Under the pieces are notes generated by a model. That model saw nothing but the letters and a program-made list of their open reading frames with translations, had not been told where the DNA came from and searched no databases. Shown piece by piece: positions 561 to 25,600 of a stretch of DNA of 64,000 bases. How positions within the stretch are numbered: the first letter of the stretch is position 1; every line of letters starts with the position of its first letter. Location of the stretch: positions 7,502,001 to 7,566,000 of the forward strand of contig OZ059899.1 in assembly GCA_964057225.1 (NCBI GenBank), written 5' to 3'. The position numbers were made by a program, and so were the translations under genes. The stretch is from Auanema rhodensis. Lineage: Eukaryota; Animalia; Nematoda.

Positions 561-3500
561 TTACGGTTTTAATTTTGGATCTTTTTCCTGAAACAATAAA
601 TACAAATAAAGAAATATTATGTTTTAATATTTTTATAGAGAATGTACCGACTGCCTTCCTAAAACTTTTTGAACCAACTCTTCTTGACTATTTTTATTAT
701 GGAAATCTGAGACAATCACGTTGTGATCCGCCGGAATACCGAAATCCATATTACCATCTATAATAATGATAATATATATATACATGTATTAACTTATTTA
801 TAAACTAACTGTTAATATTTACTCCAATTACTTGATCAAACAGTGTCATATTCAATTTGGGTTTATGGGTCTCTTCAGAATCCCTTAATTATAAAATAAG
901 TAAATTATTGAAGAACATTCCGATATACCCTCCATAAAACAAAATCAAACAAGTATTCTTTATTCCATCCATAAAAGTAGTTTCGTTCAAATCTTCAATA
1001 AGGCTGAAACAAAAAAATTAAATGTTTTTAGTAATGATGTAAGAAAAATCAGCTTGAATATTAAATTTGAAAAAAAACCAAAACTTACTCTTCTGGATCA
1101 CTCTCAAAGGAAAAACCAGAATGATATAAGTTATCTAAGTCATAATTAAAAACATTCTGAGGATATGTTTCTATGTATTGAGTGGAAAACAACACGACAT
1201 TTCCAAATGCTTGTGGATAGGCTTTGAAGATTACATCTTGGCTCTTGTATAGTTCATCTGTAACATTCTTCACAAATTGTAGTTCATCCTGAAAATCATA
1301 AATATAGTTAAAAAACTTTGTTTTTTACATTTTACATTATACATATTAGAATTAGGATAAGAATAGTCTAATACTATTAAACAATTTTTTTCTGATGGAG
1401 CAGCAGCAGTAGTAGCAGTGACTGTAGTAGAATCAGATGCTGGTGTTACAGTAGTTGGAGCTTCAGTAGTTGACATTGGTTGTTCACTAGTTGTTGGAGC
1501 TTCAGTAGTGGACGTTGGCTGTTCACTAGTTGTTGGAGCTTCAGTAGTGGACGTTGGCTGTTCACTAGTGGTTGGAGCTTCAGTAGTTGACATTGCTTGT
1601 TCGCTAGTTGTTGGAGCTTCAGTAGTGGACCTTGGCTGTTCGGGCTGCTTAAGTTTTAATTTTGGATCTTTTTCCTGAAACAATAAATACAAATAAAGAA
1701 ATATTATGTTTTAATATTTTTATAGAGAATGTACCGACTGCCTTCCTAAAACTTTTTGAACCAACTCTTCTTGACTATTTTTATTATGGAAATCTGAGAC
1801 AATCACGTTGTGATCCGCCGGAATACCGAAATCCATATTACCATCTATAATAATGATAATATATATATACATGTATTAACTTATTTATAAACTAACTGTT
1901 AATATTTACTCCAATTACTTGATCAAACAGTGTCATATTCAATTTGGGTTTATGGGTCTCTTCAGAATCCCTTAATTATAAAATAAGTAAATTATTGAAG
2001 AACATTCCGATATACCCTCCATAAAACAAAATCAAACAAGTATTCTTTATTCCATCCATAAAAGTAGTTTCGTTCAAATCTTCAATAAGGCTGAAACAAA
2101 AAAATTAAATGTTTTTAGTAATGATGTAAGAAAAATCAGCTTGAATATTAAATTTGAAAAAAAACCAAAACTTACTCTTCTGGATCACTATCAGAGAAAA
2201 AACCAGAATGATATAAGTTATCTAAGTCATAATTAAAAACATTCTGAGGATATGTTTCTATGTATTGAGTGGAAAACAACACGACATTTCCAAATGCTTG
2301 TGGATAGGCTTTGAAGATTACATCTTGGCTCTTGTAGAGTTCATCTGTAACATTCTTCACAAATTGCTTTTCATCCTGAAAATCATAAATATAGTTAAAA
2401 AACTTTGTTTTTTACATTTTACATTATACAAATTAGCATTAGGATAAGAATAGTCTAATACTATTAAACAATTTTTTTCTGATGGAGCAGCAGCAGTAGT
2501 AGCAGTGACTGTAGTCGAATCAGATGCTGTTGTTACTGTTGTTGGAGCAGCAGTAGTAGCAGTGACTGTAGTCGAATCAGATGCTGTTGTTACTGTTGTT
2601 GGAGCAGCAGTAGTAGCAGTGACTGTAGTCGAATCAGATGCTGGTGTTACAGTAGTTGGAGCAGCAGTAGTAGCAGTGACTGTAGTCGAATCAGATGCTG
2701 GTGTTACAGTAGTTGGAGCAGCAGTAGTAGCAGTGACTGTAGTCGAATCAGATGCTGGTGTTACAGTAGTTGGAGCAGCAGTAGTAGCAGTGACTGTAGT
2801 CGAATCAGATGCTGGTGTTACAGTAGTTGGAGCAGCAGTAGTAGCAGTGACTGTAGTCGAATCAGATGCTGGTGTTACAGTAGTTGGAGCAGCAGTAGTA
2901 GCAGTGACTGTAGTCGAATCAGATGCTGGTGTTACAGTAGTTGGAGCAGCAGTAGTAGCAGTGACTGTAGTCGAATCAGATGCTGGTGTTACAGTAGTTG
3001 GAGCAGCAGTAGTAGCAGTGACTGTAGTCGAATCAGATGCTGGTGTTACAGTAGTTGGAGCAGCAGTAGTAGCAGTGACTGTAGTCGAATCAGATGCTGG
3101 TGTTACAGTAGTTGGAGCAGCAGTAGTAGCAGTGACTGTAGTCGAATCAGATGCTGTTGTTACTGTAGTTGGAGCAGCAGTAGTAGCAGTGACTGTAGAC
3201 GAATCAGATGCTGTTGTTACAGTAATTGGAGTAGCAGTGACTGTAGTCGAATCAGATGCTGGTGTTACAGTAGTTGGAGCAGCAGTAGTAGCAGTGACTG
3301 TAGTCGAATCAGATGCTGTTGTTATAGTAGTTGGAGCAGCAGTAGTAGCAGTGACTGTAGTCGAATCAGATGCTGTTGTTACAGTAGTTGGAGCAGCAGT
3401 AGTAGCAGTGACTGTAGACGAATCAGATGCTGTTGTTACAGTAATTGGAGTAGCAGTGACTGTAGTCGAATCAGATGCTGTTGTTACAGTAGTTGGAGCA

Positions 3501-6500
3501 GCAGTAGTAGCAGTGACTGTAGTCGAATCAGATGCTGTTGTTACTGTTGTTGGAGCAGCAGTAGTAGCAGTGACTGTAGTCGAATCAGATGCTGTTGTTA
3601 CAGTAGTTGGAGCAGCAGTAGTAGCAGTGACTGTAGTCGAATCAGATGCTATTGTTACAGTAGTTGGAGTAGCAGTGACTGTAGTCGAATCAGATGCTGT
3701 TGTTACAGTAGTTGGAGCAGCAGTAGTAGCAGTGACTGTAGTCGAATCAGATGCTGTTGTTACAGTAGTTGGAGCAGCAGTAGTAGCAGTGACTGTAGTC
3801 GAATCAGATGCTGTTGTTACAGTAGTTGGAGCAGCAGTAGTAGCAGTGACTGTAGTCGAATCAGATGCTGTTGTTACAGTAGTTGGAGTAGCAGTGACTG
3901 TAGTCGAATCAGATGCTGTTGTTACAGTAGTTGGAGCAGCAGTAGTAGCAGTGACTGTAGTCGAATCAGATGCTGTTGTTACAGTAGTTGGAGCAGCAGT
4001 AGTAGCAGTGACTGTAGTCGAATCAGATGCTGGTGTTATAGTAGTTGGAGCAGCAGTAGTAGCAGTGACTGTAGTCGAATCAGATGCTGGTGTTACAGTA
4101 GTTGGAGCAGCAGTAGTAGCAGTGACTGTAGTCAAATCAGATGCTGTTGTTACAGTAGTTGGAGCAGCAGTAGTAGCAGTGACTGTAGTCGAATCAGATG
4201 CTGTTGTTACAGTAGTTGGAGCAGCAGTAGTAGCAGTGACTGTAGTCGAATCAGATGCTGTTGTTACTGTTGTTGGAGCAGCAGTAGTAGCAGTGACTGT
4301 AGTCGAATCAGATGCTGTTGTTACTGTTGTTGGAGCAGCAGTAGTAGCAGTGACTGTAGTCGAATCAGATGCTGGTGTTATAGTAGTTGGAGCAGCAGTA
4401 GTAGCAGTGACTGTAGTCGAATCAGATGCTGTTGTTATAGTAGTTGGAGCAGCAGTAGTAGCAGTGACTGTAGTCGAATCAGATGCTGGTGTTATAGTAG
4501 TTGGAGCAGCAGTAGTAGCAGTGACTGTAGTCGAATCAGATGCTGTTGTTATAGTAGTTGGAGCAGCAGTAGTAGCAGTGACTGTAGTCGAATCAGATGC
4601 TGTTGTTACTGTTGTTGGAGCAGCAGTAGTAGCAGTGACTGTAGTCGAATCAGATGCTGGTGTTATAGTAGTTGGAGCAGCAGTAGTAGCAGTGACTGTA
4701 GTCGAATCAGATGCTGTTGTTACTGTTGTTGGAGCAGCAGTAGTAGCAGTGACTGTAGTCGAATCAGATGCTGTTGTTACTGTTGTTGGAGCAGCAGTAG
4801 TAGCAGTGACTGTAGTCGAATCAGATGCTGGTGTTATAGTAGTTGGAGCAGCAGTAGTAGCAGTGACTGTAGTCGAATCAGATGCTGTTGTTATAGTAGT
4901 TGGAGCAGCAGTAGTAGCAGTGACTGTAGTCGAATCAGATGCTGTTGTTACAGTAGTTGGAGCAGCAGTAGTAGCAGTGACTGTAGTCGAATCAGATGCT
5001 GTTGTTACAGTAGTTGGAGCAGCAGTAGTAGCAGTGACTGTAGTCGAATCAGATGCTGTTGTTACAGTAGTTGGAGCAGCAGTAGTAGCAGTGACTGTAG
5101 TCGAATCAGATGCTGTTGTTACAGTAGTTGGAGCAGCAGTAGTAGCAGTGACTGTAGTCGAATCAGATGCTGGTGTTACAGTAGTTGGAGCAGCAGTAGT
5201 AGCAGTGACTGTAGTCGAATCAGATGCTGTTGTTACAGTAGTTGGAGCAGCAGTAGTAGCAGTGACTGTAGTCGAATCAGATGCTGGTGTTATAGTAGTT
5301 GGAGCAGTAGTAGTAACGGTAGTGATTGGAATTGAGGTAGTACCCGTAGAATGAGCTAAGTAAATATATATTCAAAGTGTAATATATAATATGCTTACTT
5401 ATTGTTCCAGCTATAGCTGCTGAAATATTGTTGTTGTCAGATCCATAAATAATTACTGATTGTTGTGTCATATTATATATAACTTTAAGCTCGGCTGAAG
5501 TTTTCTTCAAACTAGCTAAAATTGGAGACTTGAGTGATTCCAAATGGATTCCAACATAGAAATTGTCATTTTTCATGCTTAAAAAGAAACATTTATGATT
5601 GAACCAAGTTTTGAATCATACTCACTCTGTGGTTATACATGGGACGAAATAGAGTAATTGATCGTTAGTCAACAAATTTGTAGAATAAGATTCAAAAAAC
5701 CTTAAACAAGTATAAGAATATGTTATTAGAAACGAAATATACCGTGTTTGATTAATCCTCTCTGATTTTGCAGTTTTCAATGTATTTCTTATTAATTGAA
5801 TCATATCATTTTTATTTTGAATATTTGAGAATGTAGTTTGAGTAGAATATGTTCCTAAACGATACATTATTGTTGGATCATTGATATCTTGAAGAGTTTG
5901 TATAGCAAGGTCACGATTCTAAAATATATTTTCTTTACTTTATATACGTAATTGATTTTCTAACCGTTGTCATCGAACAATCATCTATTCCAGAATTCCT
6001 CTTTATTCGTTTATTGTTGGAATTGAAACCATCAGAATCTGATATGGCAATTGTAACAACTTTACCTAAAAATTATATGTTAGTTGTTTTCATAAAAGAA
6101 ATATTTAAGAAGATGATATGAATAAATTTATTTTAATTTCTTGTTATATTTCACTTAATTCAATTAAATTTTCTTATTTAAATGTTTAAATATATGGTGG
6201 TTGTTGCATTACAATTCTGCCTTTGCCGGAAAAAAAGCTTCCCTGTTGAATGATATTGAAAATACCCATAGAGCTTTTGAAATGTTTAAAAATCGTTTAG
6301 CAGCCTGATAACAAAACTTTATGCACTTTTTAACCTTAAAAATAACCATACTGTTGCTCACAAGGAAATGCACTTCAAAACAATCTCCAAAAAAATCTTG
6401 ATACTTTCAAGTAGTTCGAGAGTGAAAGATTGGCTTAAGGAATTTCAATAATATATGTTTCATCCACATTACAATTCTGACTAAGCTTCAGGTAATAACT

Positions 6501-7209
6501 TGAAGATTTTCTTTCTATAAAACCAAAAATTGTTTTCGTGGGAAGATTACAACTATTGCTAGAGTAATAGATATAGCAGCAGAACTTTCGATAATAATCG
6601 GGACTGTTCGCAATATGGACTAAACAATGAATCTTATGTCTAACATGTAAATTTTGTTGTTTCGGACAATGCACCGAGAAAATCGACAACTTATTATATG
6701 ATCACAATCATTTTTTTTTAATTAGTTAAATATCATACAATTATCAGTTCAGAAGATAAGAAACAGAAACAGAAGTGATCTCTTTTATTTAACAGGAAAT
6801 GAAAAAAGTTGTAAAAAGAATGTGATCAAGTTAAAAAATATTAAAATATGTTTGATTACAAGATAAAAGCATTTATCCATTAAAAGTTAGTTTGCAACCC
6901 TTTTAATTTTCCAATATGCTTTATAAAATAAACTGATAACTAGTTTATGACACGATTTGGGTGTGCCAGTGCGTTTTAATTCTAATACAATGCTTTGATG
7001 ACTCAATAAATAGCTAAAATTTGAACCAAAAATTTGATTTCTTTTGAAATAAGATAAAATATATTCTTACCACTATCATCATTTTTTATTGTAACTGCGA
7101 CTATTACAATAACTGCTACAAATATTAAAATTATTAGTAATATAGAGAGTAGAATAAAAATCCTCAAGTATTGTTGTTTCTTGGATTTATGTTGTTCTCC
7201 ATCAGACAT
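561..7209 (-). CDS. Type II membrane mucin-like protein ('gene B'): TM anchor, RIKR site, globular domain, 19-aa Thr/Ala/Ser repeat array, two tandem copies of a C-terminal globular domain
   Basis: Spliced by hand: MSDGEQHKSKKQQYLRIFILLSILLIILIFVAVIVIVAVTIKNDDS|GKVVTIAISDSDGFNSNNKRIKRNSGIDDCSMTT|NRDLAIQ...INQTR|FFESYS...LLYFVPCITT|MKNDNF...AIAGTI|THSTGTTS-(repeats)-APSEKNCLIVLDYSYPNANLYN|DEKQFVKN...|...CLILFYGG|...|linker|second copy|EKDPKLKP*. GT-AG introns keep frame. The 3' end is the least certain part. Confidence 0.8.
566..2548. repeat. Tandem segmental duplication, offset 1087 bp (copy 1 ~566-1461, copy 2 ~1653-2548), covering several exons and introns of gene B
   Basis: Direct comparison of the two copies; ORF-track pairs 763/1850 and 1085/2172 differ by exactly 1087. 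Confidence 0.95.
2486..5310 (-). repeat. Coding minisatellite, 57-bp unit (TTVT[T/P]ASDSTTVTATTAAP) with occasional 48-bp variants, about 50 copies
   Basis: Unit read directly (+ strand ...ggagcagcagtagtagcagtgactgtagtcgaatcagatgctg[g/t]tgtta...); minus frame is open throughout. Confidence 0.97.
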
Positions 7210-7663
7210 GACAACCTGTTAGACTTAATTATAAATTATGTTTAATATAGAAACATGAACAAGAGAAAATACTCGAAAAATATTTATAAAACATAGTTAT
7301 ATGTAAAATAAAACATGATATATACAGCTTTTCAAATTTAAAAAAAAATTAACAAGTAGAGCGAAACAATTCCGACAATAACTACAATGAGAAGAGTTTA
7401 AAATGAGAAAAGAAATAATGTTCGTTATGTAGCAAAGAAAGATGAAACGATTACACCCCTTACCGTTATCAGCGTTAATATTGTACGATAAGAAGTTGAA
7501 GAATGCTTAAATATAATATGATACTGAACTTGCATATCTAACATATTCCGGATGAGAAATAGTAACCTGAATTTTAGAAAAAGAAACATTGTTAACAATA
7601 AATATAACACTATGAAATAAAAAGTAATATTAAATACAATATAACAAGCTAATTACTAACCAA

Positions 7664-10600
7664 TCACTTTATCGGTGTTGAAGTTTCTGTGGTGGACATT
7701 GGTTGTTCACTAGTTGTTGGAGCTTCTGTAGTTGACATTGGTAGTTCACTTGTGGATTGAGCTTCAGTAGTTGGCATTGGTTGTTCACTAGTTGTTGGAG
7801 CTTCAGTAGTGGACGTTGGCTGTTCACTAGTGGTTGGAGCTTCAGTTGACATTGGTTGTTCACTAGTTGTTGGAGCTTCAGTAGTAGACGTTGGCTGTTC
7901 ACTTGTGGATTGAGCTTCAGTACTTGACATTGGTTGTTCACTAGTTGTTGGAGCTTCAGTAGTGGACGTTGGCTGTTCACTTGTGGATTGAGCTTCAGTA
8001 GTTGACATTGGTTGTTCACTAGTTGTTGGAGCTTCAGTAGTGGACGTTGGCTGTTCACTAGTGGTTGGAGCTTCAGTTGACATTGGTTGTTCACTAGTTG
8101 TTGGAGCTTCAGTAGTAGACGTTGGCTGTTCACTTGTGGATTGAGCTTCAGTACTTGACATTGGTTGTTCACTAGTTGTTGGAGCTTCAGTAGTGGACGT
8201 TGGCTGTTCACTAGTGGTTGGAGCTTCAGTTGACATTGGTTGTTCACTAGTTGTTGGAGCTTCAGTAGTAGACGTTGGCTGTTCACTTGTGGATTGAGCT
8301 TCAGTAGTTGACATTGGTTGTTCACTAGTTGTTGGAGCTTCAGTAGTAGACGTTGGCTGTTCACTTGTGGCTTGAGCTTCAGTAGTAGACGTTGGCTGTT
8401 CACTAGTTGTTAGAGCTTCAGTAGTTGACATTGGTAGTTCACTAGTTATTGGAGCTTCAGTAGTAGACGTTGGCTGTTCACTTGTGGATTGAGCTTCAGT
8501 ACTTGACATTGGTTGTTCACTAGTTGTTGGAGCTTCAGTAGTGGACGTTGGCTGTTCACTAGTGGTTGGAGCTTCAGTTGACATTGGTTGTTCACTAGTT
8601 GTTGGAGCTTCAGTAGTGGACGTTGGCTGTTCACTTGTGGATTGAGCTTCAGTAGTTGACATTGGTTGTTCACTAGTTGTTGGAGCTTCAGTAGTGGACG
8701 TTGGCTGTTCACTAGTGGTTGGAGCTTCAGTTGACATTGGTTGTTCACTAGTTGTTGGAGCTTCAGTAGTAGACGTTGGCTGTTCACTTGTGGATTGAGC
8801 TTCAGTACTTGACATTGGTTGTTCACTAGTTGTTGGAGCTTCAGTAGTGGACGTTGGCTGTTCACTAGTGGTTGGAGCTTCAGTTGACATTGGTTGTTCA
8901 CTAGTTGTTGGAGCTTCAGTAGTAGACGTTGGCTGTTCACTTGTGGATTGAGCTTCAGTACTTGACATTGGTTGTTCACTAGTTGTTGGAGCTTCAGTAG
9001 TGGACGTTGGCTGTTCACTAGTGGTTGGAGCTTCAGTTGACATTGGTTGTTCACTAGTTGTTGGAGCTTCAGTAGTGGACGTTGGCTGTTCAGTTGTGGA
9101 TTGAGCTTCTGTAGTTGACATTGGTTGTTCACTAGTTATTGGAGCTTCAGTAGTAGACGTTGGCTGTTCACTTGTGGATTGAGCTTCAGTAGTAGACGTT
9201 GGCTGTTCACTTGTGGCTTGAGCTTCAGTAGTTGACATTGGTTGTTCACTAGTTGTTGGAGCTTCAGTAGTAGACGTTGGCTGTTCACTAGTGGTTAGAG
9301 CTTCAGTAGTTGACATTGGTTGTTCACTAGTTGTTGGAGCTTCAGTAGTAGACGTTGGCTGTTCACTAGTGGTTAGAGCTTCAGTAGTTGACATTGGTAG
9401 TTCACTAGTTATTGGAGCTTCAGTAGTAGACGTTGGCTGTTCACTTGTGGATTGAGCTTCAGTAGTTGACATTGGTTGTTCACTAGTTGTTGGAGCTTCA
9501 GTAGTGGATGTTGGCTGTTCACTAGTGGTTGGAGCTTCAGTTGACATTGGTTGTTCACTAGTTATTGGAGCTTCAGTAGTAGACGTTGGCTGTTCACTTG
9601 TGGCTTGAGCTTCAGTAGTTGACATTGGTTGTTCACTAGTTGTTGGAGCTTCAGTAGTAGACGTTGGCTGTTCACTAGTGGTTAGAGCTTCAGTAGTTGA
9701 CATTGGTTGTTCACTAGTTGTTGGAGCTTCAGTAGTAGACGTTGGCTGTTCACTAGTGGTTAGAGCTTCAGTAGTTGACATTGGTAGTTCACTAGTTATT
9801 GGAGCTTCAGTAGTAGACGTTGGCTGTTCACTTGTGGATTGAGCTTCAGTAGTTGACATTGGTTGTTCACTAGTTGTTGGAGCTTCAGTAGTGGATGTTG
9901 GCTGTTCACTAGTGGTTGGAGCTTCAGTTGACATTGGCTGTTCACTAGTTGTTGGAGCTTCAGTAGTAGACGTTGGCTGTTCACTTGTGGCTTGAGCTTC
10001 AGTAGTAGACGTTGGCTGTTCACTAGTTGTTAGAGCTTCAGTAGTTGACATTGGTAGTTCACTAGTTGTTGGAGCTTCTGTAGTGGACGTTGGCTGTTCA
10101 CTAGTGGTTAGAGCTTCAGTTGACATTGGTTGTTCACTAGTTATTGGAGCTTCAGTAGTAGACGTTGGCTGTTCACTTGTGGATTGAGCTTCAGTAGTTG
10201 ACATTGGTTGTTCACTAGTTGTTGGAGCTTCAGTAGTAGACGTTGGCTGTTCACTTGTGGCTTGAGCTTCAGTAGTTGACATTGGTTGTTCACTAGTTAT
10301 TGGAGCTTCAGTAGTAGACGTTGGCTGTTCACTTGTGGATTGAGCTTCAGTAGTTGACATTGGTTGTTCACTAGTTATTGGAGCTTCAGTAGTGGACGTT
10401 GGCTGTTCAGTTGTGGATTGAGCTTCTGTAGTGGACGTTGGTTGTTCACTAGTTATTGGAGCTTCAGTAGTAGACGTTGGCTGTTCACTTGTGGCTTGAG
10501 CTTCAGTAGTAGACGTTGGCTGTTCACTAGTTGTTAGAGCTTCAGTAGTTGACATTGGTAGTTCACTAGTTATTGGAGCTTCAGTAGTGGACGTTGGCTG

Positions 10601-13600
10601 TTCACTAGTGGTTGGAGCTTCAGTAGTTGACATTGGTTCTTCACTAGTTGTTGGAGCTTCAGTAGTAGACGTTGGCTCTTCACTTGTGGCTTGAGCTTCA
10701 GTAGTGGACGTTGGCTGTTCACTAGTGGTTAGAGCTTCTGTAGTGGACGTTGGCTGTTCACTAGTGGTTGGAGCTTCAGAAGTTGACATTGGTTGTTCAC
10801 TAGTTATTGGAGCTTCAGTAGTAGACGTTGGCTGTTCACTTGTGGATTGAGCTTCAGTTGTTGACATTGGTTGTTCACTAGTTGTTGGAGCTTCTGTAGT
10901 GGACGTTGGCTGTTCACTAGTGGTTAGAGCTTCAGTTGACATTGGTTGTTCACTAGTTATTGGAGCTTCAGTAGTAGACGTTGGCTGTTCACTTGTGGAT
11001 TGAGCTTCAGTAGTGGACGTTGGCTGTTCACTTGTGGCTTGAGCTTCAGTAGTGGACGTTGGCTGTTCACTAGTGGTTAGAGCTTCAGTAGTTGACATTG
11101 GTTGTTCACTAGTTGTTGGAGCTTCAGTAGTAGACGTTGGCTGTTCACTTGTGGCTTGAGCTTCAGTAGTTGACATTGGTTGTTCACTAGTTGTTGGAGC
11201 TTCAGTAGTAGACGTTGGCTGTTCACTAGTGGTTAGAGCTTCAGTAGTTGACATTGGTTGTTCACTAGTTGTTGGAGCTTCAGTAGTAGACGTTGGCTGT
11301 TCACTAGTGGTTAGAGCTTCAGTAGTTGACATTGGTAGTTCACTAGTTATTGGAGCTTCAGTAGTAGACGTTGGCTGTTCACTTGTGGATTGAGCTTCAG
11401 TAGTTGACATTGGTTGTTCACTAGTTGTTGGAGCTTCAGTAGTGGACGTTGGCTGTTCACTAGTGGTTGGAGCTTCAGTTGACATTGGTTGTTCACTAGT
11501 TATTGGAGCTTCAGTAGTAGACGTTGGCTGTTCACTTGTGGCTTGAGCTTCAGTAGTAGACGTTGGCTGTTCACTAGTTGTTAGAGCTTCAGTAGTTGAC
11601 ATTGGTAGTTCACTAGTTATTGGAGCTTCAGTAGTTGACATTGGTTGTTCACTAGTTGTTGGAGCTTCAGTAGTAGACGTTGGCTGTTCACTAGTTGTTA
11701 GAGCTTCAGTAGTTGACATTGGTAGTTCACTAGTTATTGGAGCTTCAGTAGTAGACGTTGGCTGTTCACTTGTGGATTGAGCTTCAGTTGTTGACATTGG
11801 TTGTTCACTAGTTGTTGGAGCTTCTGTAGTGGACGTTGGCTGTTCACTAGTGGTTAGAGCTTCAGTTGACATTGGTTGTTCACTAGTTATTGGAGCTTCA
11901 GTAGTAGACGTTGGCTGTTCACTTGTGGATTGAGCTTCAGTAGTTGACATTGGTTGTTCACTAGTTGTTGGAGCTTCAGTAGTAGACGTTGGCTCTTCAC
12001 TTGTGGCTTGAGCTTCAGTAGTGGACGTTGGCTGTTCACTTGTGGCTTGAGCTTCAGTAGTTGACATTGGTTGTTCACTAGTTATTGGAGCTTCAGTAGT
12101 GGACGTTGGCTGTTCAGTTGTGGATTGAGCTTCTGTAGTGGACGTTGGTTGTTCACTAGTGGTTGGAGCTTCAGTAGTTGACATTGGTTCTTCACTAGTT
12201 GTTGGAGCTTCAGTTGACATTGGTTGTTCACTAGTTATTGGAGCTTCAGTAGTAGACGTTGGCTGTTCACTTGTGGCTTGAGCTTCAGTAGTAGACGTTG
12301 GCTGTTCACTAGTTGTTGGAGCTTCTGTAGTGGACGTTGGCTGTTCACTAGTGTTTAGAGCTTCAGTTGACATTGGCTGTTCACTTGTGGCTTGAGCTTC
12401 AGTAGTTGACATTGGTTGTTCACTAGTTGTTGGAGCTTCAGTAGTAGACGTTGGCTGTTCACTTGTGGCTTGAGCTTCAGTAGTAGACGTTGGCTGTTCA
12501 CTAGTTGTTAGAGCTTCAGTAGTTGACATTGGTAGTTCACTAGTTATTGGAGCTTCAGTAGTTGACATTGGTAGTTCACTAGTTGTTGGAGCTTCAGTAG
12601 TAGACGTTGGCTGTTCACTAGTTGTTAGAGCTTCAGTAGTTGACATTGGTAGTTCACTAGTTATTGGAGCTTCAGTAGTAGACGTTGGCTGTTCACTTGT
12701 GGATTGAGCTTCAGTTGTTGACATTGGTTGTTCACTAGTTGTTGGAGCTTCTGTAGTGGACGTTGGCTGTTCACTAGTGGTTAGAGCTTCAGTTGACATT
12801 GGTTGTTCACTAGTTATTGGAGCTTCAGTAGTAGACGTTGGCTGTTCACTTGTGGATTGAGCTTCAGTAGTTGACATTGGTTGTTCACTAGTTGTTGGAG
12901 CTTCAGTAGTAGACGTTGGCTCTTCACTTGTGGCTTGAGCTTCAGTAGTGGACGTTGGCTGTTCACTTGTGGCTTGAGCTTCAGTAGTTGACATTGGTTG
13001 TTCACTAGTTGTTGGAGCTTCAGTAGTAGACGTTGGCTGTTCACTAGTGGTTAGAGCTTCAGTTGACATTGGTTGTTCACTAGTTATTGGAGCTTCAGTA
13101 GTAGACGTTGGTTGTTCACTTGTGGATTGAGCTTCAGTAGTTGACATTGGTTGTTCACTAGTTGTTGGAGCTTCAGTAGTAGACGTTGGCTGTTCACTAG
13201 TGGTTAGAGCTTCAGTAGTGGACGTTGGCTGTTCACTAGTGGTTGGAGCTTCAGAAGTTGACATTGGTTGTTCACTAGTTATTGGAGCTTCAGTAGTGGA
13301 CGTTGGCTGTTCACTAGTGGTTAGAGCTTCTGTAGTGGACGTTGGCTGTTCACTAGTGGTTGGAGCTTCAGAAGTTGACATTGGTTGTTCACTAGTTATT
13401 GGAGCTTCAGTAGTAGACGTTGGCTGTTCACTTGTGGATTGAGCTTCAGTTGTTGACATTGGTTGTTCACTAGTTGTTGGAGCTTCTGTAGTGGACGTTG
13501 GCTGTTCACTAGTGGTTAGAGCTTCAGTTGACATTGGTTGTTCACTAGTTATTGGAGCTTCAGTAGTAGACGTTGGCTGTTCACTTGTGGATTGAGCTTC

Positions 13601-16600
13601 AGTAGTGGACGTTGGCTGTTCACTTGTGGCTTGAGCTTCAGTAGTGGACGTTGGCTGTTCACTAGTGGTTAGAGCTTCAGTAGTTGACATTGGTTGTTCA
13701 CTAGTTGTTGGAGCTTCAGTAGTAGACGTTGGCTGTTCACTTGTGGCTTGAGCTTCAGTAGTTGACATTGGTTGTTCACTAGTTGTTGGAGCTTTAGTAG
13801 TAGACGTTGGCTGTTCACTTGTGGCTTGAGCTTCAGTAGTTGACATTGGTTGTTCACTAGTTGTTGGAGCTTCAGTAGTAGACGTTGGCTGTTCACTTGT
13901 GGCTTGAGCTTCAGTAGTTGACATTGGTTGTTCACTAGTTGTTGGAGCTTCAGTAGTAGACGTTGGCTGTTCACTTGTGGATTGAGCTTCAGTAGTTGAC
14001 ATTGGTTGTTCACTAGTTGTTGGAGCTTCAGTAGTAGACGTTGGCTCTTCACTTGTGGCTTGAGCTTCAGTAGTGGACGTTGGCTGTTCACTTGTGGCTT
14101 GAGCTTCAGTAGTAGACGTTGGCTGTTCACTAGTTGTTGGAGCTTCTGTAGTGGACGTTGGCTGTTCACTAGTGGTTAGAGCTTCAGTTGACATTGGTTG
14201 TTCACTAGTTATTGGAGCTTCAGTAGTAGACGTTGGCTGTTCACTTGTGGATTGAGCTTCAGTAGTTGACATTGGTTGTTCACTAGTTGTTGGAGCTTCA
14301 GTAGTAGACGTTGGCTGTTCACTTGTGGATTGAGCTTCAGTTGACATTGGTTGTTCACTAGTTATTGGAGCTTCAGTAGTAGACGTTGGCTGTTCACTTG
14401 TGGATTGAGCTTCAGTAGTTGACATTGGTTGTTCACTAGTTGTTGGAGCTTCAGTAGTAGACGTTGGCTCTTCACTTGTGGCTTGAGCTTCAGTAGTGGA
14501 CGTTGGCTGTTCACTTGTGGCTTGAGCTTCAGTAGTAGACGTTGGCTGTTCACTAGTTGTTGGAGCTTCAGTAGTAGACGTTAGTTGTTCACTAGTTGTT
14601 GGAGCTTCTGTAGTGGACGTTAGTTGTTCACTAGTAGTTGGACCTTCAGTAGTAGACGTTGGCTCTTCACTTGTGGCTTGAGCTTCAGTAGTGGACGTTG
14701 GCTGTTCACTAGTGGTTGGAGCTTCAGTAGTTGACATTGGTTGTTCACTAGTTATTGGAGCTTCAGTAGTAGACGTTGGCTGTTCAGTTGTGTATTGAGC
14801 TTCTGTAGTGGACGTTGGTTGTTCACTAGTTGTTGGAGCTTCTGTAGTGGACGTTAGTTGTTCACTAGTAGTTGGACCTTCAGTAGTAGACGTTGGCTGT
14901 TCAGTTGTGTATTGAGCTTCTGTAGTGGACGTTGGTTGTTCACTAGTTGTTGGAGCTTCTGTAGTGGACGTTAGTTGTTCACTAGTTGTTGGAGCTTCTG
15001 TACTGGACGTTAGTTGTTCACTAGTTGTTGGAGCTTCTGTAGTGGACGTTAGTTGTTCACTAGTTGTTGGAGCTTGTGTAGTAGACGTTGGCTGTTCACT
15101 TGTGGATTGAGCTTCAGTAGTTGACATTGGTTGTTCACTAGTTGTTGGAGCTTCAGTAGTAGACGTTGGCTGTTCACTTGTGGCTTGAGCTTCAGTAGTA
15201 GACGTTGGCTGTTCACTAGTTGTTAGAGCTTCAGTAGTTGACATTGGTTGTTCACTAGTTGTGGGAGCTTCTGTAGTGGACGTTAGTTGTTCACTACTTG
15301 TTGGAGCTTCTGTAGTGGACGTTGGTTGTTCACTAGTTATTGGAGCTTCAGTAGTAGACGTTGGCTGTTCACTTGTGGATTGAGCTTCAGTTGTTGACAT
15401 TGGTTGTTCACTAGTTGTTGGAGCTTCTGTAGTGGACGTTGGCTGTTCACTAGTGGTTAGAGCTTCAGTTGACATTGGTTGTTCACTAGTTATTGGAGCT
15501 TCAGTAGTAGACGTTGGCTGTTCACTTGTGGATTGAGCTTCAGTAGTGGACGTTGGCTGTTCACTTGTGGCTTGAGCTTCAGTAGTGGACGTTGGCTGTT
15601 CACTAGTGGTTAGAGCTTCAGTAGTTGACATTGGTTGTTCACTAGTTGTTGGAGCTTCAGTAGTAGACGTTGGCTGTTCACTTGTGGCTTGAGCTTCAGT
15701 AGTTGACATTGGTTGTTCACTAGTTGTTGGAGCTTTAGTAGTAGACGTTGGCTGTTCACTTGTGGCTTGAGCTTCAGTAGTTGACATTGGTTGTTCACTA
15801 GTTGTTGGAGCTTCAGTAGTAGACGTTGGCTGTTCACTTGTGGCTTGAGCTTCAGTAGTTGACATTGGTTGTTCACTAGTTGTTGGAGCTTCAGTAGTAG
15901 ACGTTGGCTGTTCACTTGTGGATTGAGCTTCAGTAGTTGACATTGGTTGTTCACTAGTTGTTGGAGCTTCAGTAGTAGACGTTGGCTCTTCACTTGTGGC
16001 TTGAGCTTCAGTAGTGGACGTTGGCTGTTCACTTGTGGCTTGAGCTTCAGTAGTAGACGTTGGCTGTTCACTAGTTGTTGGAGCTTCTGTAGTGGACGTT
16101 GGCTGTTCACTAGTGGTTAGAGCTTCAGTTGACATTGGTTGTTCACTAGTTATTGGAGCTTCAGTAGTAGACGTTGGCTGTTCACTTGTGGATTGAGCTT
16201 CAGTAGTTGACATTGGTTGTTCACTAGTTGTTGGAGCTTCAGTAGTAGACGTTGGCTGTTCACTTGTGGATTGAGCTTCAGTTGACATTGGTTGTTCACT
16301 AGTTATTGGAGCTTCAGTAGTAGACGTTGGCTGTTCACTTGTGGATTGAGCTTCAGTAGTTGACATTGGTTGTTCACTAGTTGTTGGAGCTTCAGTAGTA
16401 GACGTTGGCTCTTCACTTGTGGCTTGAGCTTCAGTAGTGGACGTTGGCTGTTCACTTGTGGCTTGAGCTTCAGTAGTAGACGTTGGCTGTTCACTAGTTG
16501 TTGGAGCTTCAGTAGTAGACGTTAGTTGTTCACTAGTTGTTGGAGCTTCTGTAGTGGACGTTAGTTGTTCACTAGTAGTTGGACCTTCAGTAGTAGACGT

Positions 16601-19600
16601 TGGCTCTTCACTTGTGGCTTGAGCTTCAGTAGTGGACGTTGGCTGTTCACTAGTGGTTGGAGCTTCAGTAGTTGACATTGGTTGTTCACTAGTTATTGGA
16701 GCTTCAGTAGTAGACGTTGGCTGTTCAGTTGTGTATTGAGCTTCTGTAGTGGACGTTGGTTGTTCACTAGTTGTTGGAGCTTCTGTAGTGGACGTTAGTT
16801 GTTCACTAGTAGTTGGACCTTCAGTAGTAGACGTTGGCTGTTCAGTTGTGTATTGAGCTTCTGTAGTGGACGTTGGTTGTTCACTAGTTGTTGGAGCTTC
16901 TGTAGTGGACGTTAGTTGTTCACTAGTTGTTGGAGCTTCTGTACTGGACGTTAGTTGTTCACTAGTTGTTGGAGCTTCTGTAGTGGACGTTAGTTGTTCA
17001 CTAGTTGTTGGAGCTTGTGTAGTAGACGTTGGCTGTTCACTTGTGGATTGAGCTTCAGTAGTTGACATTGGTTGTTCACTAGTTGTTGGAGCTTCAGTAG
17101 TAGACGTTGGCTGTTCACTTGTGGCTTGAGCTTCAGTAGTAGACGTTGGCTGTTCACTAGTTGTTAGAGCTTCAGTAGTTGACATTGGTTGTTCACTAGT
17201 TGTGGGAGCTTCTGTAGTGGACGTTAGTTGTTCACTACTTGTTGGAGCTTCTGTAGTGGACGTTGGTTGTTCACTAGTTGTTGGAGCTTCTGTAGTGGAC
17301 GTTAGTTGTTCACTAGTTGTTGGAGCTTCTGTAGTGGACGTTAGTTGTTCACTAGTTATTGGAGCTTCAGTAGTAGACGTTGGCTGTTCACTTGTGGATT
17401 GAGCTTCAGTAGTTGACATTGGTTGTTCACTAGTTGTTGGAGCTTTAGTAGTGGACGTTGGCTGTTCACTAGTGGTTGGAGCTTCAGTTGACATTGGTTG
17501 TTCACTAGTTATTGGAGCTTCAGTAGTAGACGTTGGCTGTTCACTTGTGGCTTGAGCTTCAGTAGTAGACGTTGGCTGTTCACTAGTTGTTAGAGCTTCA
17601 GTAGTAGACGTTGGCTGTTCACTAGTTGTTAGAGCTTCAGTAGTTGACATTGGTAGTTCACTAGTTATTGGAGCTTCAGTAGTGGACGTTGGCTGTTCAC
17701 TAGTGGTTGGAGCTTCAGTAGTAGACGTTGGCTCTTCACTTGTGGCTTGAGCATCAGTAGTGGACGTTGGCTGTTCACTAGTGGTTAGAGCTTCAGTAGT
17801 TGACATTGGTAGTTCACTAGTTATTGGAGCTTCAGTAGTGAACGTTGGCTGTTCACTAGTGATTGGAGCTTCAGTAGTGGACGTTGGCTGTTCACTTGTG
17901 GCTTTAGCTTCAGTAGTGGACGTTGGCTGTTCACTAGTGGTTAGAGCTTCAGTAGTTGACATTGGTTGTTCACTAGTTGTTGGAGCTTCAGTAGTTGACA
18001 TTGGTTGTTCACTAGTTGTTGGAGCTTCAGTAGTAGACGTTGGCTGTTCACTTGTGGCTTGAGCTTCAGTAGTTGACATTGGTTGTTCACTAGTTGTTGG
18101 AGCTTCAGTAGTAGACGTTGGCTGTTCACTTGTGGCTTGAGCTTCAGTAGTTGACATTGGTTGTTCACTAGTTGTTGGAGCTTCAGTAGTAGACGTTGGC
18201 TGTTCACTTGTGGCTTGAGCTTCAGTAGTTGACATTGGTTGTTCACTAGTTGTTGGAGCTTCAGTAGTAGACGTTGGCTGTTCACTTGTGGCTTGAGCTT
18301 CAGTAGTAGACGTTGGCTGTTCACTAGTTGTTAGAGCTTCAGTAGTTGACATTGGTTGTTCACTAGTTGTGGGAGCTTCTGTAGTGGACGTTAGTTGTTC
18401 ACTACTTGTTGGAGCTTCTGTAGTGGACGTTGGTTGTTCACTAGTTGTTGGAGCTTCTGTAGTGGACGTTAGTTGTTCACTAGTTGTTGGAGCTTCTGTA
18501 GTGGACGTTAGTTGTTCACTAGTTATTGGAGCTTCAGTAGTAGACGTTGGCTGTTCACTTGTGGATTGAGCTTCAGTAGTTGACATTGGTTGTTCACTAG
18601 TTGTTGGAGCTTTAGTAGTGGACGTTGGCTGTTCACTAGTGGTTGGAGCTTCAGTTGACATTGGTTGTTCACTAGTTATTGGAGCTTCAGTAGTAGACGT
18701 TGGCTGTTCACTTGTGGCTTGAGCTTCAGTAGTAGACGTTGGATGTTCACTAGTTGTTAGAGCTTCAGTAGTAGACGTTGGCTGTTCACTAGTTGTTAGA
18801 GCTTCAGTAGTTGACATTGGTAGTTCACTAGTTATTGGAGCTTCAGTAGTGGACGTTGGCTGTTCACTAGTGGTTGGAGCTTCAGTAGTAGACGTTGGCT
18901 CTTCACTTGTGGCTTGAGCATCAGTAGTGGACGTTGGCTGTTCACTAGTGGTTAGAGCTTCAGTAGTTGACATTGGTAGTTCACTAGTTATTGGAGCTTC
19001 AGTAGTGAACGTTGGCTGTTCACTAGTGATTGGAGCTTCAGTAGTGGACGTTGGCTGTTCACTTGTGGCTTTAGCTTCAGTAGTGGACGTTGGCTGTTCA
19101 CTAGTGGTTAGAGCTTCAGTAGTTGACATTGGTTGTTCACTAGTTGTTGGAGCTTCAGTAGTTGACATTGGTTGTTCACTAGTTGTTGGAGCTTCAGTAG
19201 TAGACGTTGGCTGTTCACTTGTGGCTTGAGCTTCAGTAGTTGACATTGGTTGTTCACTAGTTGTTGGAGCTTCAGTAGTAGACGTTGGCTGTTCACTTGT
19301 GGCTTGAGCTTCAGTAGTTGACATTGGTTGTTCACTAGTTGTTGGAGCTTCAGTAGTAGACGTTGGCTGTTCACTTGTGGCTTGAGCTTCAGTAGTTGAC
19401 ATTGGTTGTTCACTAGTTGTTGGAGCATCAGTAGTGGACGTTGGCTGTTCACTAGTGGTTAGAGCTTCAGTAGTTGACATTGGTTGTTCACTAGTTGTTG
19501 GAGCTTCAGTAGTAGACGTTGGCTGTTCACTTGTGGATTGAGCTTCAGTAGTGGACGTTGGCTCTTCACTTGTGGCTTGAGCTTCAGTAGTGGACGTTGG

Positions 19601-22600
19601 CTGTTCACTTGTGGCTTGAGCTTCAGTAGTGGACGTTGGCTGTTCACTAGTGGTTAGAGCTTCAGTAGTTAACATTGGTTGTTCACTAGTTGTTGGAGCT
19701 TCAGTAGTGGACGTTAGTTGTTCACTAGTTATTGGAGCTTCAGTAGTAGACGTTGGCTGTTCACTTGTGGATTGAGCTTCAGTAGTTGACATTGGTTGTT
19801 CACTAGTTGTTGGAGCTTCAGTAGTAGACGTTGGCTGTTCACTTGTGGATTGAGCTTCAGTAGTGGACGTTGGCTGTTCACTTGTGGCTTGAGCTTCAGT
19901 AGTGGACGTTGGCTGTTCACTAGTGGTTAAAGCTTCAGTAGTTGACATTGGTTGTTCACTAGTTGTTGGAGCTTCAGTAGTAGACGTTGGCTGTTCACTT
20001 GTGGCTTGAGCTTCAGTAGTGGACGTTGGCTCTTCACTTGTGGCTTGAGCTTCAGTAGTGGACGTTGGCTGTTCACTAGTGGTTGGAGCTTCAGAAGTTG
20101 ACAGTGGTTGTTCACTAGTTATTGGAGCTTCAGTAGTAGACGTTGGCTGTTCACTAGTGGTTAGAGCTTCAGTTGACATTGGTTGTTCACTAGTTATTGG
20201 AGCTTCAGTAGTAGACGTTGGCTGTTCACTTGTGGATTGAGCTTCAGTAGTTGACATTGGTTGTTCACTAGTTGTTGGAGCTTCAGTAGTAGACGTTGGC
20301 TCTTCACTTGTGGCTTGAGCTTCAGTAGTAGACGTTGGCTCTTCACTTGTGGCTTGAGCTTCAGTAGTGGACGTTGGCTGTTCACTAGTGGTTGGAGCTT
20401 CAGAAGTTGACAGTGGTTGTTCACTAGTTATTGGAGCTTCAGTAGTAGACGTTGGCTGTTCACTTGTGAATTGAGCTTCAGTTGTTGACATTGGTTGTTC
20501 ACTAGTTGTTGGAGCTTCAGTAGTAGACGTTGGCTGTTCACTTGTGGCTTGAGCTTCAGTAGTTGACATTGGTTGTTCACTAGTTGTTGGATCTTCAGTA
20601 GTAGACGTTGGCTGTTCACTAGTTATTGGAGCTTCAGTAGTGGACGTTGGCTGTTCAGTTGTGGATTGAGCTTCTGTAGTGGACGTTGGTTGTTCACTAG
20701 TTGTTGGAGCTTCTGTAGTAGACGTTGGCTCTTCACTTGTGGCTTGAGCTTCAGTAGTGGACGTTGGCTGTTCACTTGTGGCTTGAGCTTCAGTAGTGGA
20801 CGTTGGCTGTTCACTAGTGGTTAGAGCTTCAGTAGTTGACATTGGTTGTTCACTAGTTGTTGGAGCTTCAGTAGTAGACGTTGGCTGTTCACTGGTGGTT
20901 AGAGCTTCAGTAGTAGACGTTGGCTGTTCACTGGTGGTTAGAGCTTCAGTAGTTGACATTGGTTGTTCACTAGTTGTTGGAGCTTCAGTAGTTGACATTG
21001 GTTGTTCACTAGTTGTTGGAGCTTCAGTAGTAGACGTTGGCTGTTCACTAGTGGTTAGAGCTTCAGTAGTTGACATTGGTTGTTCACTAGTTGTTGGAGC
21101 TTCAGTAGTTGACATTGGTTGTTCACTAGTTGTTGGAGCTTCAGTAGTTGACATTGGTTGTTCACTAGTTGTTGGAGCTTCAGTAGTAGACGTTGGCTGT
21201 TCACTGGTGGTTAGAGCTTCAGTAGTTGACATTGGTTGTTCACTAGTGGTTAGAGCTTCAGTAGTTGACATTGGTTGTTCACTAGTTGTTGGAGCTTCAG
21301 TAGTAGACGTTGGCTGTTCACTAGTGGTTAGAGCTTCAGTAGTTGACATTGGTTGTTCACTAGTTGTTGGAGCTTCAGTAGTTGACATTGGTTGTTCACT
21401 AGTTGTTGGAGCTTCAGTAGTTGACATTGGTTGTTCACTAGTTGTTGGAGCTTCAGTAGTAGACGTTGGCTGTTCACTAGTGGTTAGAGCTTCAGTAGTA
21501 GACGTTGGCTGTTCACTTGTGGCTTGAGCTTCAGTAGTTGACATTGGTTGTTCACTAGTTGTTGGAGCTTCAGTAGTAGACATTGGTTGTTCACTAGTTG
21601 TTGGAGCTTCAGTAGTAGACGTTGGCTGTTCACTAGTTGTTGGAGCTTCAGTAGTGGACGTTGGCTGTTCACTAGTGGTTAGAGCTTCAGTAGTTGACAT
21701 TGGTTGTTCACTAGTTGTTGGAGCTTCAGTAGTAGACGTTGGCTGTTCACTTGTGGCTTGAGCATCAGTAGTGGACGTTGGCTGTTCACTTGTGGCTTGA
21801 GCTTCAGTAGTTGACATTGGTAGTTCACTAGTTATTGGAGCTTCTGTAGTGGACGTTGGCTGTTCACTAGTGATTGGAGCTTCAGTAGTGGACGTTGGCT
21901 GTTCACTTGTGGCTTTAGCTTCAGTAGTGGACGTTGGCTGTTCACTAGTGGTTAGAGCTTCAGTAGTTGACATTGGTTGTTCACTAGTTGTTGGAGCTTC
22001 AGTAGTTGACATTGGTTGTTCACTAGTTGTTGGAGCTTCAGTAGTAGACGTTGGCTGTTCACTTGTGGCTTGAGCTTCAGTAGTTGACATTGGTTGTTCA
22101 CTAGTTGTTGGAGCTTCAGTAGTAGACGTTGGCTGTTCACTTGTGGCTTGAGCTTCAGTAGTTGACATTGGTTGTTCACTAGTTGTTGGAGCTTCAGTAG
22201 TAGACGTTGGCTGTTCACTTGTGGCTTGAGCTTCAGTAGTTGACATTGGTTGTTCACTAGTTGTTGGAGCATCAGTAGTGGACGTTGGCTGTTCACTAGT
22301 GGTTAGAGCTTCAGTAGTTGACATTGGTTGTTCACTAGTTGTTGGAGCTTCAGTAGTAGACGTTGGCTGTTCACTTGTGGATTGAGCTTCAGTAGTGGAC
22401 GTTGGCTCTTCACTTGTGGCTTGAGCTTCAGTAGTGGACGTTGGCTGTTCACTTGTGGCTTGAGCTTCAGTAGTGGACGTTGGCTGTTCACTAGTGGTTA
22501 GAGCTTCAGTAGTTAACATTGGTTGTTCACTAGTTGTTGGAGCTTCAGTAGTGGACGTTAGTTGTTCACTAGTTATTGGAGCTTCAGTAGTAGACGTTGG

Positions 22601-25600
22601 CTGTTCACTTGTGGATTGAGCTTCAGTAGTTGACATTGGTTGTTCACTAGTTGTTGGAGCTTCAGTAGTAGACGTTGGCTGTTCACTTGTGGATTGAGCT
22701 TCAGTAGTGGACGTTGGCTGTTCACTTGTGGCTTGAGCTTCAGTAGTGGACGTTGGCTGTTCACTAGTGGTTAAAGCTTCAGTAGTTGACATTGGTTGTT
22801 CACTAGTTGTTGGAGCTTCAGTAGTAGACGTTGGCTGTTCACTTGTGGCTTGAGCTTCAGTAGTGGACGTTGGCTCTTCACTTGTGGCTTGAGCTTCAGT
22901 AGTGGACGTTGGCTGTTCACTAGTGGTTGGAGCTTCAGAAGTTGACAGTGGTTGTTCACTAGTTATTGGAGCTTCAGTAGTAGACGTTGGCTGTTCACTA
23001 GTGGTTAGAGCTTCAGTTGACATTGGTTGTTCACTAGTTATTGGAGCTTCAGTAGTAGACGTTGGCTGTTCACTTGTGGATTGAGCTTCAGTAGTTGACA
23101 TTGGTTGTTCACTAGTTGTTGGAGCTTCAGTAGTAGACGTTGGCTCTTCACTTGTGGCTTGAGCTTCAGTAGTAGACGTTGGCTCTTCACTTGTGGCTTG
23201 AGCTTCAGTAGTGGACGTTGGCTGTTCACTAGTGGTTGGAGCTTCAGAAGTTGACAGTGGTTGTTCACTAGTTATTGGAGCTTCAGTAGTAGACGTTGGC
23301 TGTTCACTTGTGAATTGAGCTTCAGTTGTTGACATTGGTTGTTCACTAGTTGTTGGAGCTTCAGTAGTAGACGTTGGCTGTTCACTTGTGGCTTGAGCTT
23401 CAGTAGTTGACATTGGTTGTTCACTAGTTGTTGGATCTTCAGTAGTAGACGTTGGCTGTTCACTAGTTATTGGAGCTTCAGTAGTGGACGTTGGCTGTTC
23501 AGTTGTGGATTGAGCTTCTGTAGTGGACGTTGGTTGTTCACTAGTTGTTGGAGCTTCTGTAGTAGACGTTGGCTCTTCACTTGTGGCTTGAGCTTCAGTA
23601 GTGGACGTTGGCTGTTCACTTGTGGCTTGAGCTTCAGTAGTGGACGTTGGCTGTTCACTAGTGGTTAGAGCTTCAGTAGTTGACATTGGTTGTTCACTAG
23701 TTGTTGGAGCTTCAGTAGTAGACGTTGGCTGTTCACTGGTGGTTAGAGCTTCAGTAGTAGACGTTGGCTGTTCACTGGTGGTTAGAGCTTCAGTAGTTGA
23801 CATTGGTTGTTCACTAGTTGTTGGAGCTTCAGTAGTTGACATTGGTTGTTCACTAGTTGTTGGAGCTTCAGTAGTAGACGTTGGCTGTTCACTAGTGGTT
23901 AGAGCTTCAGTAGTTGACATTGGTTGTTCACTAGTTGTTGGAGCTTCAGTAGTTGACATTGGTTGTTCACTAGTTGTTGGAGCTTCAGTAGTTGACATTG
24001 GTTGTTCACTAGTTGTTGGAGCTTCAGTAGTAGACGTTGGCTGTTCACTGGTGGTTAGAGCTTCAGTAGTTGACATTGGTTGTTCACTAGTGGTTAGAGC
24101 TTCAGTAGTTGACATTGGTTGTTCACTAGTTGTTGGAGCTTCAGTAGTAGACGTTGGCTGTTCACTAGTGGTTAGAGCTTCAGTAGTTGACATTGGTTGT
24201 TCACTAGTTGTTGGAGCTTCAGTAGTTGACATTGGTTGTTCACTAGTTGTTGGAGCTTCAGTAGTTGACATTGGTTGTTCACTAGTTGTTGGAGCTTCAG
24301 TAGTAGACGTTGGCTGTTCACTAGTGGTTAGAGCTTCAGTAGTAGACGTTGGCTGTTCACTTGTGGCTTGAGCTTCAGTAGTTGACATTGGTTGTTCACT
24401 AGTTGTTGGAGCTTCAGTAGTAGACATTGGTTGTTCACTAGTTGTTGGAGCTTCAGTAGTAGACGTTGGCTGTTCACTAGTTGTTGGAGCTTCAGTAGTG
24501 GACGTTGGCTGTTCACTAGTGGTTAGAGCTTCAGTAGTTGACATTGGTTGTTCACTAGTTGTTGGAGCTTCAGTAGTAGACGTTGGCTGTTCACTAGTTG
24601 TTGGAGCTTCAGTAGTAGACCTTGGCTGTTCACTTGTGGCTTGAGCTTCAGTAGTTGACATTGGTTGTTCACTAGTTGTTGGAGCTTCTGTAGTGGACGT
24701 TAGTTGTTCACTAGTTGTTGGAGCTTCTGTAGTGGACGTTAGTTGTTCACTAGTTGTTGGAGCTTCTGTAGTGGACGTTAGTTGTTCACTAGTTGTTGGA
24801 GCTTCTGTAGTGGACGTTAGTTGTTCACTAGTTGTTGGAGCTTCTGTAGTGGACGTTAGTTGTTCACTAGTTGTTGGAGCTTCTGTAGTGGACGTTAGTT
24901 GTTCACTAGTTGTTGGAGCTTCTGTAGTGGACGTTAGTTGTTCACTAGTTGTTGGAGCTTCTGTAGTGGACATTAGTGGTTCACTAGTTGTTGGAGCTTC
25001 AGTAGTGGACGTTAGTTGTTCACTAGTTGTTGGAGCTTCTGTAGTGGACGTTAGTTGTTCACTAGTTGTTGGAGCTTCTGTAGTGGACGTTAGTTGTTCA
25101 CTAGTTGTTGGAGCTTCTGTAGTGGACATTAGTTGTTCACTAGTTGTTGGAGCTTCTGTAGTGGACATTAGTGGTTCACTAGTTGTTGGAGCTTCTGTAG
25201 TGGACATTAGTGGTTCACTAGTTGTTGGAGCTTCTGTAGTGGACATTAGTGGTTCACTAGTTGTTGGAGCTTCTGTAGTGGACGTTAGTTGTTCACTAGT
25301 TGTTGGAGCTTCTGTAGTGGACGTTAGTTGTTCACTAGTTGTTGGAGCTTCAGTAGTAGACGTTGGCTGTTCACTAGTTGTTGGAGCTTCAGTAGTGGAC
25401 GTTGGCTGTTCACTAGTGGTTAGAGCTTCAGTAGTTGACATTGGTTGTTCACTAGTGGTTAGAGCTTCAGTAGTAGACGTTGGCTGTTCACTTGTGGCTT
25501 GAGCTTCAGTAGTTGACGTTAGTTGTTCACTTGTGGCTTGAGCTTCAGTAGTTGACATTGGTTGTTCACTAGTTGTTGGAGCTTCTGTAGTGGACGTTAG

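Follow-up and report, generated by a model that had tools for sequence, protein, structure and literature searches.

A duplicated gene end joined by units of a neighbouring mucin array in Auanema rhodensis

In the nematode Auanema rhodensis, two neighbouring mucin genes are built from different tandem repeats. How a short run of repeats of the type found in one of them, gene A, came to lie within the coding end of the other, gene B, is the question addressed here. The DNA analysed is a stretch of 64,000 nucleotides (assembly GCA_964057225.1, contig OZ059899.1, positions 7,502,001 to 7,566,000 of the forward strand), referred to below as the window, and all positions are counted from its first letter. 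A sequence-only reading of this DNA had proposed that ectopic recombination or template switching between the two mucin arrays produced a duplication in gene B, and that the locus is a direct record of repeat exchange between paralogues.

Two mucin genes and the duplicated tail of gene B

Genes A and B both lie on the minus strand, head to tail, and are alike in build: each opens with a short hydrophobic anchor, after which come several small exons that make up the head and then a single-exon mucin array. Both carry the long Thr/Ser/Pro-rich tandem repeats in one open exon that typify mucins, and all units are open. The gene A array forms one open frame of about 6350 codons with a unit of 13 residues (Table 1). 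The heads of the two genes share a faint likeness only (44% over 25 residues), and a counterpart of the gene B tail was looked for near gene A within the window and not found. A word search with the 1004-residue array frame of gene B, under search length limits, returned low-complexity bacterial matches only. Outside the arrays the window is AT-rich (31% G+C), with introns of about 45–85 nt. The apparent starts of both mucin genes are located at 7072-7210 and 27840-27935 on the minus strand. Judged from the sequence, both proteins appear to begin with a short cytoplasmic stub and one hydrophobic span, i.e., a type II signal anchor; if this is true, the array and the duplicated tail would be extracellular, with the tail at the tip. 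Further along the window, open frames at 48754-49913 on the plus strand resemble exons of what we take to be an ATP-citrate lyase gene.

The last 57-bp unit of the gene B array and the entire tail, including its introns, are present in two head-to-tail copies with a tandem period of about 1.1 kb. At an offset of 1087 the copies differ by 13 mismatches in 896 bp, the introns and exons of the two tails being approximately 98.5–99% identical, and the identity begins and ends sharply at 566 and 1461. The natural protein of gene B ends with ...EKDPKLKP. The duplication breakpoint lies between 566 and 565, within the last sense codon (CCG) and two bases before the stop, and in the upstream copy CCG-TAA is replaced by CTT-AAG-CAG-CCC-GAA. 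Because the breakpoint falls within the last sense codon, reading passes in frame through a chimeric exon into the second tail.

Table 1. Positions of the features described in the text, counted from the first letter of the window.
Feature	Position	Strand	Basis or detail
Natural stop codon TAA of gene B	561..563	-	sequence, frame
Downstream copy: one 57-bp unit (private variant at 1429) and tail exons, natural stop	566..1461	-	offset-1087 identity
Chimeric exon: last tail exon of upstream copy, filler, A-type units, one B-type unit, start of second tail	1336..1674	-	translation; RNA contigs
J2 (A-to-B) microhomology	1454..1461	-	GTTGGAGC, 8 bp exact, encodes APTT in both unit types
Templated insert	1462..1639	-	178 bp, about 4.6 gene-A-type 39-bp units; five counting the shared APTT
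Filler at J1	1640..1652	-	13 nt, CTTAAGCAGCCCG, encodes part of LKQP
Upstream copy: last 57-bp array unit and tail exons/introns, stop codon lost	1653..2548	-	offset-1087 identity; exon frame continues to 1674
Gene B mucin array	2489..5315	-	50 units of 57 bp; unit of 19 residues
Gene A mucin array	7676..26683	-	about 489 units of 39 bp, some 36 bp (TRF, translation)
Exact repeat in gene A	13381-15338	-	1958 bp, lag 1941
Exact repeat in gene A	17048-18259	-	528+683 bp, lag 1167
Exact repeat in gene A	19009-21751 = 21853-24595	-	2743 bp, lag 2844, about 101 non-matching bases between copies
Twin candidate donor, equally similar, without EQPRS unit	21557..21746	-	alignment
Best candidate donor stretch, including the only EQPRS (R) unit of the array, 24593-24631	24401..24631	-	alignment, unit reading

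The chimeric exon (339 nt, 113 open codons, phase 0 at both ends) has its acceptor at 1674/1675 and its donor at 1335/1336, as placed by the ends and joints of RNA contigs. It encodes, in order, EKDPKLK-LKQP, five A-type units (EQPRS, EQAMS, EQPTS, EQPTS and EQPMS), VTPASDSTTVTATTAAAP and the start of the tail. The translation of the minus-strand open reading frame 1270..1692 matches exactly the peptide quoted in the sequence-only reading. TRF reports 4.9 copies of a 39-bp unit at 1450-1641, and their consensus is the same as that of the 489-copy gene A array. The insert variants at 1591 and 1598 are private, each being unique in the window.

The two junctions of the linker differ in microhomology. 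At J2, where the A-type units meet the B-type unit, it amounts to 8 bp, and the likeness over 1450-1461 extends to 11 of 12 bases. At J1, where the tail passes through the filler into the A-type units, there is no clear microhomology. Allowing up to 3 mismatches, a search of the window for possible templates of the 13-nt filler returned the filler alone. A weak likeness links the first seven bases of the filler to the gene A unit that lies upstream of R (CTTAAGC versus CTCAAGC, 6/7); the spacing is off by 2 nt and we give this likeness little weight. A word search with the chimeric exon gave no matches under search length limits that exclude longer proteins, and metagenomes scanned for exact occurrences of J2, and afterwards of J1, yielded 0 matches, which is no surprise for a nematode locus.

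What had been observed in the letters of this region is borne out. TRF, the translation and the offset-1087 duplication agree on about five gene-A-type 39-bp units between two tail copies of gene B, and the assembly sequence at 1454-1461 contains the in-frame fusion to one 57-bp B unit at a shared APTT. The gene-A codon usage of the linker, also pointed out at that time, simply follows from its near-identity to gene A.

When 1103-1453 is compared with 2190-2540, all nine differences within 566-1428 are exonic according to the RNA-defined introns. They cluster at 1103-1110 and 1280-1282, and most of them alter amino acids (SFE/FSD, L/K, S/A, M/L). The 57-bp unit of the downstream copy (1439-1461 versus 2526-2548) is of the VTPASD variant, which is common at 2640-3096, unlike the 3' end of the main gene B array, where the VTTASD variant is found at 2526 and 2583. 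This would be explained by turnover at the end of the array after the duplication, or by a switch into a different unit. Exon-by-exon Pfam searches with the duplicated tail and the head exons yielded nothing below E=0.04 and no credible family, and an ESM Atlas look-up with the largest tail exon gave nothing usable.

The duplication in public DNA and RNA runs

The evidence from public runs consists of Logan contigs (k=31), which are better at showing presence than absence. A DNA contig (X1 record 8, study P1; 1597-1682) and an RNA contig (X10 record 13, study P4; 1555-1675) both run through J1 with 0 differences, and the RNA contig ends at the predicted acceptor with 7 unplaced letters, like a spliced molecule. 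X10 is recognized as RNA because it contains four GT..AG joints on the minus strand; in its record 9 the introns 758-809, 884-928 and 1004-1088 are spliced out, and this contig matches the downstream copy with 0 differences. The introns of the downstream tail at 1289-1335, 1004-1088, 884-928 and 758-809, as given by the RNA contigs, are all GT..AG on the minus strand; the last tail intron is predicted at 588-647 from the sequence and a contig end.

The contigs of X1 and X4 break exactly at 566, the edge of the duplication, as a branch at this position requires. In X4 each of the nine listed sites is split between the letters of the two copies at about 45:55, and in X1 the depth of the tail contig is 107 versus 63 for the J1 contig, i.e., about 1.7 times. 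The X10 RNA includes the letters of both copies at 1250, 1344 and 1350, and both versions of 1280-1282 are seen at the 1279-to-1335 joint. Both tails are transcribed, and we infer that one mRNA is continuous across the whole linker. J1 is not an assembly artefact. For the tail-to-linker junction, neither of the grounds on which the sequence-only reading would have failed, an assembly chimera or a linker excluded from transcripts, applies: the structure is present in the DNA of two studies and in spliced RNA.

J2 cannot be bridged by short-read contigs because only 22 of the 31-mers, starting at 1432-1453, are specific to it. A contig spanning J2 could be 52 bp long at most, and there is none among the contigs listed; for J2 the assembly is the only source. 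An 894-bp contig of X1 (566-1459) carries the private letter at 1429, which occurs nowhere else in the window, and it supports the downstream 57-bp unit.

A run under another organism label (X8, study P3, depth about 15) presents a different picture. One contig spans 400-1099 and is unbranched through 566, flank and tail have equal depth, and the tail ends at 1428, as if an ordinary B array followed. There is no J1 contig and 1622-1715 is uncovered, with the reservation that contigs show presence better than absence. X8 probably carries the unduplicated allele, which would make the duplication a presence/absence polymorphism. A simple reversion, by one crossover between the two copies in the window, was considered for X8 and rejected: such a revertant would read as copy 2 towards the array and as copy 1 towards the flank, and X8 follows the opposite pattern, copy-2-like at 1103-1110 and copy-1-like at 1250-1350. 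Beyond 1099, the X8 contig that spans 400-1099 has 87 further letters of G+C-rich sequence (beginning CCCTTACCAATGAACCCC...) not present in the window; they may reflect a structural variant, an insertion or chimerism of the contig.

At the sites where the tail copies differ, X1 has only copy-2 letters, and the X10 RNA has only copy-1 letters at 1103-1110. The distribution of the tail-copy variants points to shuffling by conversion or recombination and not to simple divergence. Since the 13 tail differences are distributed differently in X1, X8 and X10, the event is not brand new or the copies have since exchanged sequence.

Source of the insert and the proposed rearrangement

The insert (1462-1639) was compared with the whole gene A array by semi-global alignment. 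Two stretches, ending at 24590 and 21746, match it equally well with 7 edits in 178 bp (96%), followed by a third ending at 13310 with 8 edits; typical gene A stretches require about 25–30. The EQPRS variant (CCTTGGCTGTTC) occurs in the window only at 1630 and 24620, in agreement with the sequence-only reading, which had placed a single copy in gene A near 24620. This sole R unit of the array is located directly upstream, in coding direction, of the second of the twin stretches. From there the order of units in gene A is R-T-M-T-T-M, versus R-M-T-T-M in the linker. The linker can thus be read in two ways: as the stretch that includes R with one unit missing, at six base differences, or as the five units that follow R, at seven. 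By a post hoc estimate, the chance that the lone R unit among about 489 would adjoin the best match is well under 1%. On the alignment and the order of units, the donor probably lies at this stretch of gene A, which is about 23 kb from the gene B tail, upstream of it and on the same strand in the same orientation. Within the gene A array, the proposed search for a donor succeeded in part: a near copy exists and the best match is beside the EQPRS unit, but the array holds no exact donor and the twins tie.

The array of gene A contains kilobase-long exact internal repeats (Table 1), which are either very recent internal duplications or assembly products. The two best donor stretches are twins inside the 2743-bp repeat. 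The donor corresponds to the first five units of that repeat in coding direction, and the homology of the linker ends 3 nt from its edge.

A duplication accompanied by a copied stretch from a nearby locus in the same orientation, by microhomology and by unplaced bases is the signature of template switching or multi-invasion repair. Here the 7 edits in 178 bp, against the 25–30 of typical stretches, mark the joint as one copied from elsewhere. We propose a single complex rearrangement, namely a tandem duplication of the 3' end of gene B with a templated insertion, arising via replicative template switching, and put the probability of this reading at roughly 0.6; that the event was single, as well as its direction and enzymology, we infer. 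The route would have been template switching of the FoSTeS/MMBIR type or multi-invasion break repair. Synthesis at the end of the tail coding sequence would have jumped into the gene A array, copied about five units (178 bp) along with 13 untemplated or unplaced bases, and, at the GCTCCAAC (APTT) microhomology that both unit types share, switched back into the last repeat of gene B, after which the tail would have been copied again. With the first jump falling two bases short of the stop codon and the frame kept across both joints, the gene now encodes a mucin whose two tail domains flank a spacer of about 90 residues, and it is transcribed in this form.

Two other processes were considered. 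Non-allelic homologous recombination or unequal crossing-over between the arrays does not fit. It calls for long homology at both breakpoints and a product whose size reflects the spacing of the arrays; homology here is 8–11 bp at J2 and none at J1, and gene A contributes 178 bp against the approximately 22 kb that separate the genes. An insert of 178 bp whose source is about 23 kb away is a poor match to the footprint of TMEJ (polymerase theta), whose short templated inserts derive from sequence directly beside the break (PMC7368036).

The rearrangement might instead have taken two or more events. Gene conversion or end joining would first have attached A-type units to gene B, at its 3' end or its terminal repeat, and the second tail would have arisen later through an independent tandem duplication or unequal exchange. 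The insert differs by about 4% from its best donor and the tail copies by about 1.5%, and these parts need not share an age; moreover, the several long exact duplications within gene A suggest a locus that rearranges often. However, the A-type units are found exactly and only at the duplication joint, a coincidence that one event does not need, and X8 shows neither intermediate, having no J1 and an unbranched contig from tail to flank. We consider such a history unlikely.

Somewhat less probable still is descent from a third paralogue, of which 566-1652 would be the remnant, with its own short A-type/B-type array and tail, fused to gene B by a deletion that removed the stop of gene B and the head of the third gene. 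The locus is indeed a tandem cluster of similarly built mucin genes, and the filler and the private linker variants have no source in the window. On the other hand, the tails are far closer to each other than are the heads of genes A and B, their identity has sharp edges, and in X8, where the B array, the tail, its stop and the flank are all seen, nothing hints at a further gene. Both the two-step and the third-paralogue histories require more coincidences and find no support in X8. An assembly artefact, by false duplication or a chimeric join within repeats, is very improbable: although J2 lies between two repeat types without support from the contigs listed, and the long exact repeats of gene A could also be assembly products, J1 and its unique filler recur with 0 differences in an independent DNA study and in spliced RNA, contig breaks coincide exactly with the edge of the duplication in two DNA runs, and the variants of both copies are found in X4.

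If the locus is the product of template switching, the mechanism named in the sequence-only reading is retained in part. The microhomology at J2 is consistent with template switching, but J2 is the only junction that lies between the arrays; J1 joins the end of the tail, via the 13-nt filler, to the A-type units. The claim of repeat exchange between the paralogues is overstated, since neither main array holds a unit of the other type and no reciprocal or repeated exchange was found. The locus records one one-way copying event, not ongoing repeat exchange.

The template-switching reading has a bolder extension, in which the linker and the 2743-bp duplication of gene A are the results of one multi-switch replication accident in two neighbouring mucin genes. 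It is suggested because the donor consists of the first units of the 2743-bp repeat, with homology ending 3 nt from its edge, and because the approximately 101 bp between the 2743-bp copies repeat the build of the gene B joint. We regard it as a long shot. If it were true and the allele segregates among isolates, the two genes would document, in a natural and datable form, a chromoanasynthesis-like event from which a two-headed surface mucin arose.

Comparison with known systems and significance

Replicative template switching of the FoSTeS/MMBIR type yields complex tandem duplications with templated insertions. The A. rhodensis locus shares with these the head-to-tail duplication, the presence at the joint of sequence from a like-oriented locus close by, and the 8-bp microhomology at J2. 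It differs from them at J1, where a 13-nt filler takes the place of visible microhomology, and in its donor, a diverged repeat array in which no exact template can be named; its product is an in-frame, expressed domain duplication.

In the germline of C. elegans, TMEJ by polymerase theta gives rise to tandem duplications of at least 1 kb whose joints have microhomology or insertions, and the templated insertions, observed in a brc-1/brd-1 mutant background, originate in the immediate vicinity of the junction (PMC7368036). The present case is likewise a nematode tandem duplication in the range from 1 kb upward, with microhomology and an insertion at the joint. It departs from the C. elegans cases in the length and the distance of what was copied, and in that it is found in a natural genome and not in a brc-1/brd-1 mutant.

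Clustered mucin paralogues with differing repeat types are also known from Schistosoma mansoni, where intermingled r1 and r2 repeats of the SmPoMuc genes, ascribed to ectopic recombination, give mosaic genes (PMC2576457). In SmPoMuc the repeats are separate exons of a large multigene family in which mosaics are frequent (PMC2576457); unlike these, the A. rhodensis window shows one array type intruding just once, at the joint of a duplication, while its main arrays are unmixed. The human MUC4/MUC20 locus combines partial duplications with interlocus conversion, on a scale of kilobases to hundreds of kilobases and with conversion between gene copies (PMC13345508). In contrast, here one VNTR type has moved into the coding end of the neighbouring gene.

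No new mechanism is involved, as mosaic mucins and tandem duplications with inserts at the joint have already been described elsewhere, and the locus will not surprise a specialist. It is a well-preserved natural case of a complex rearrangement that builds a new protein architecture in one step, namely two tail domains on a chimeric mucin spacer, and it should serve well as a teaching and test case. The allele is expressed and probably still polymorphic, so that isolates with and without the duplication would be directly comparable. For the mucin genes themselves, it indicates that neighbouring arrays can donate sequence to each other's coding ends.
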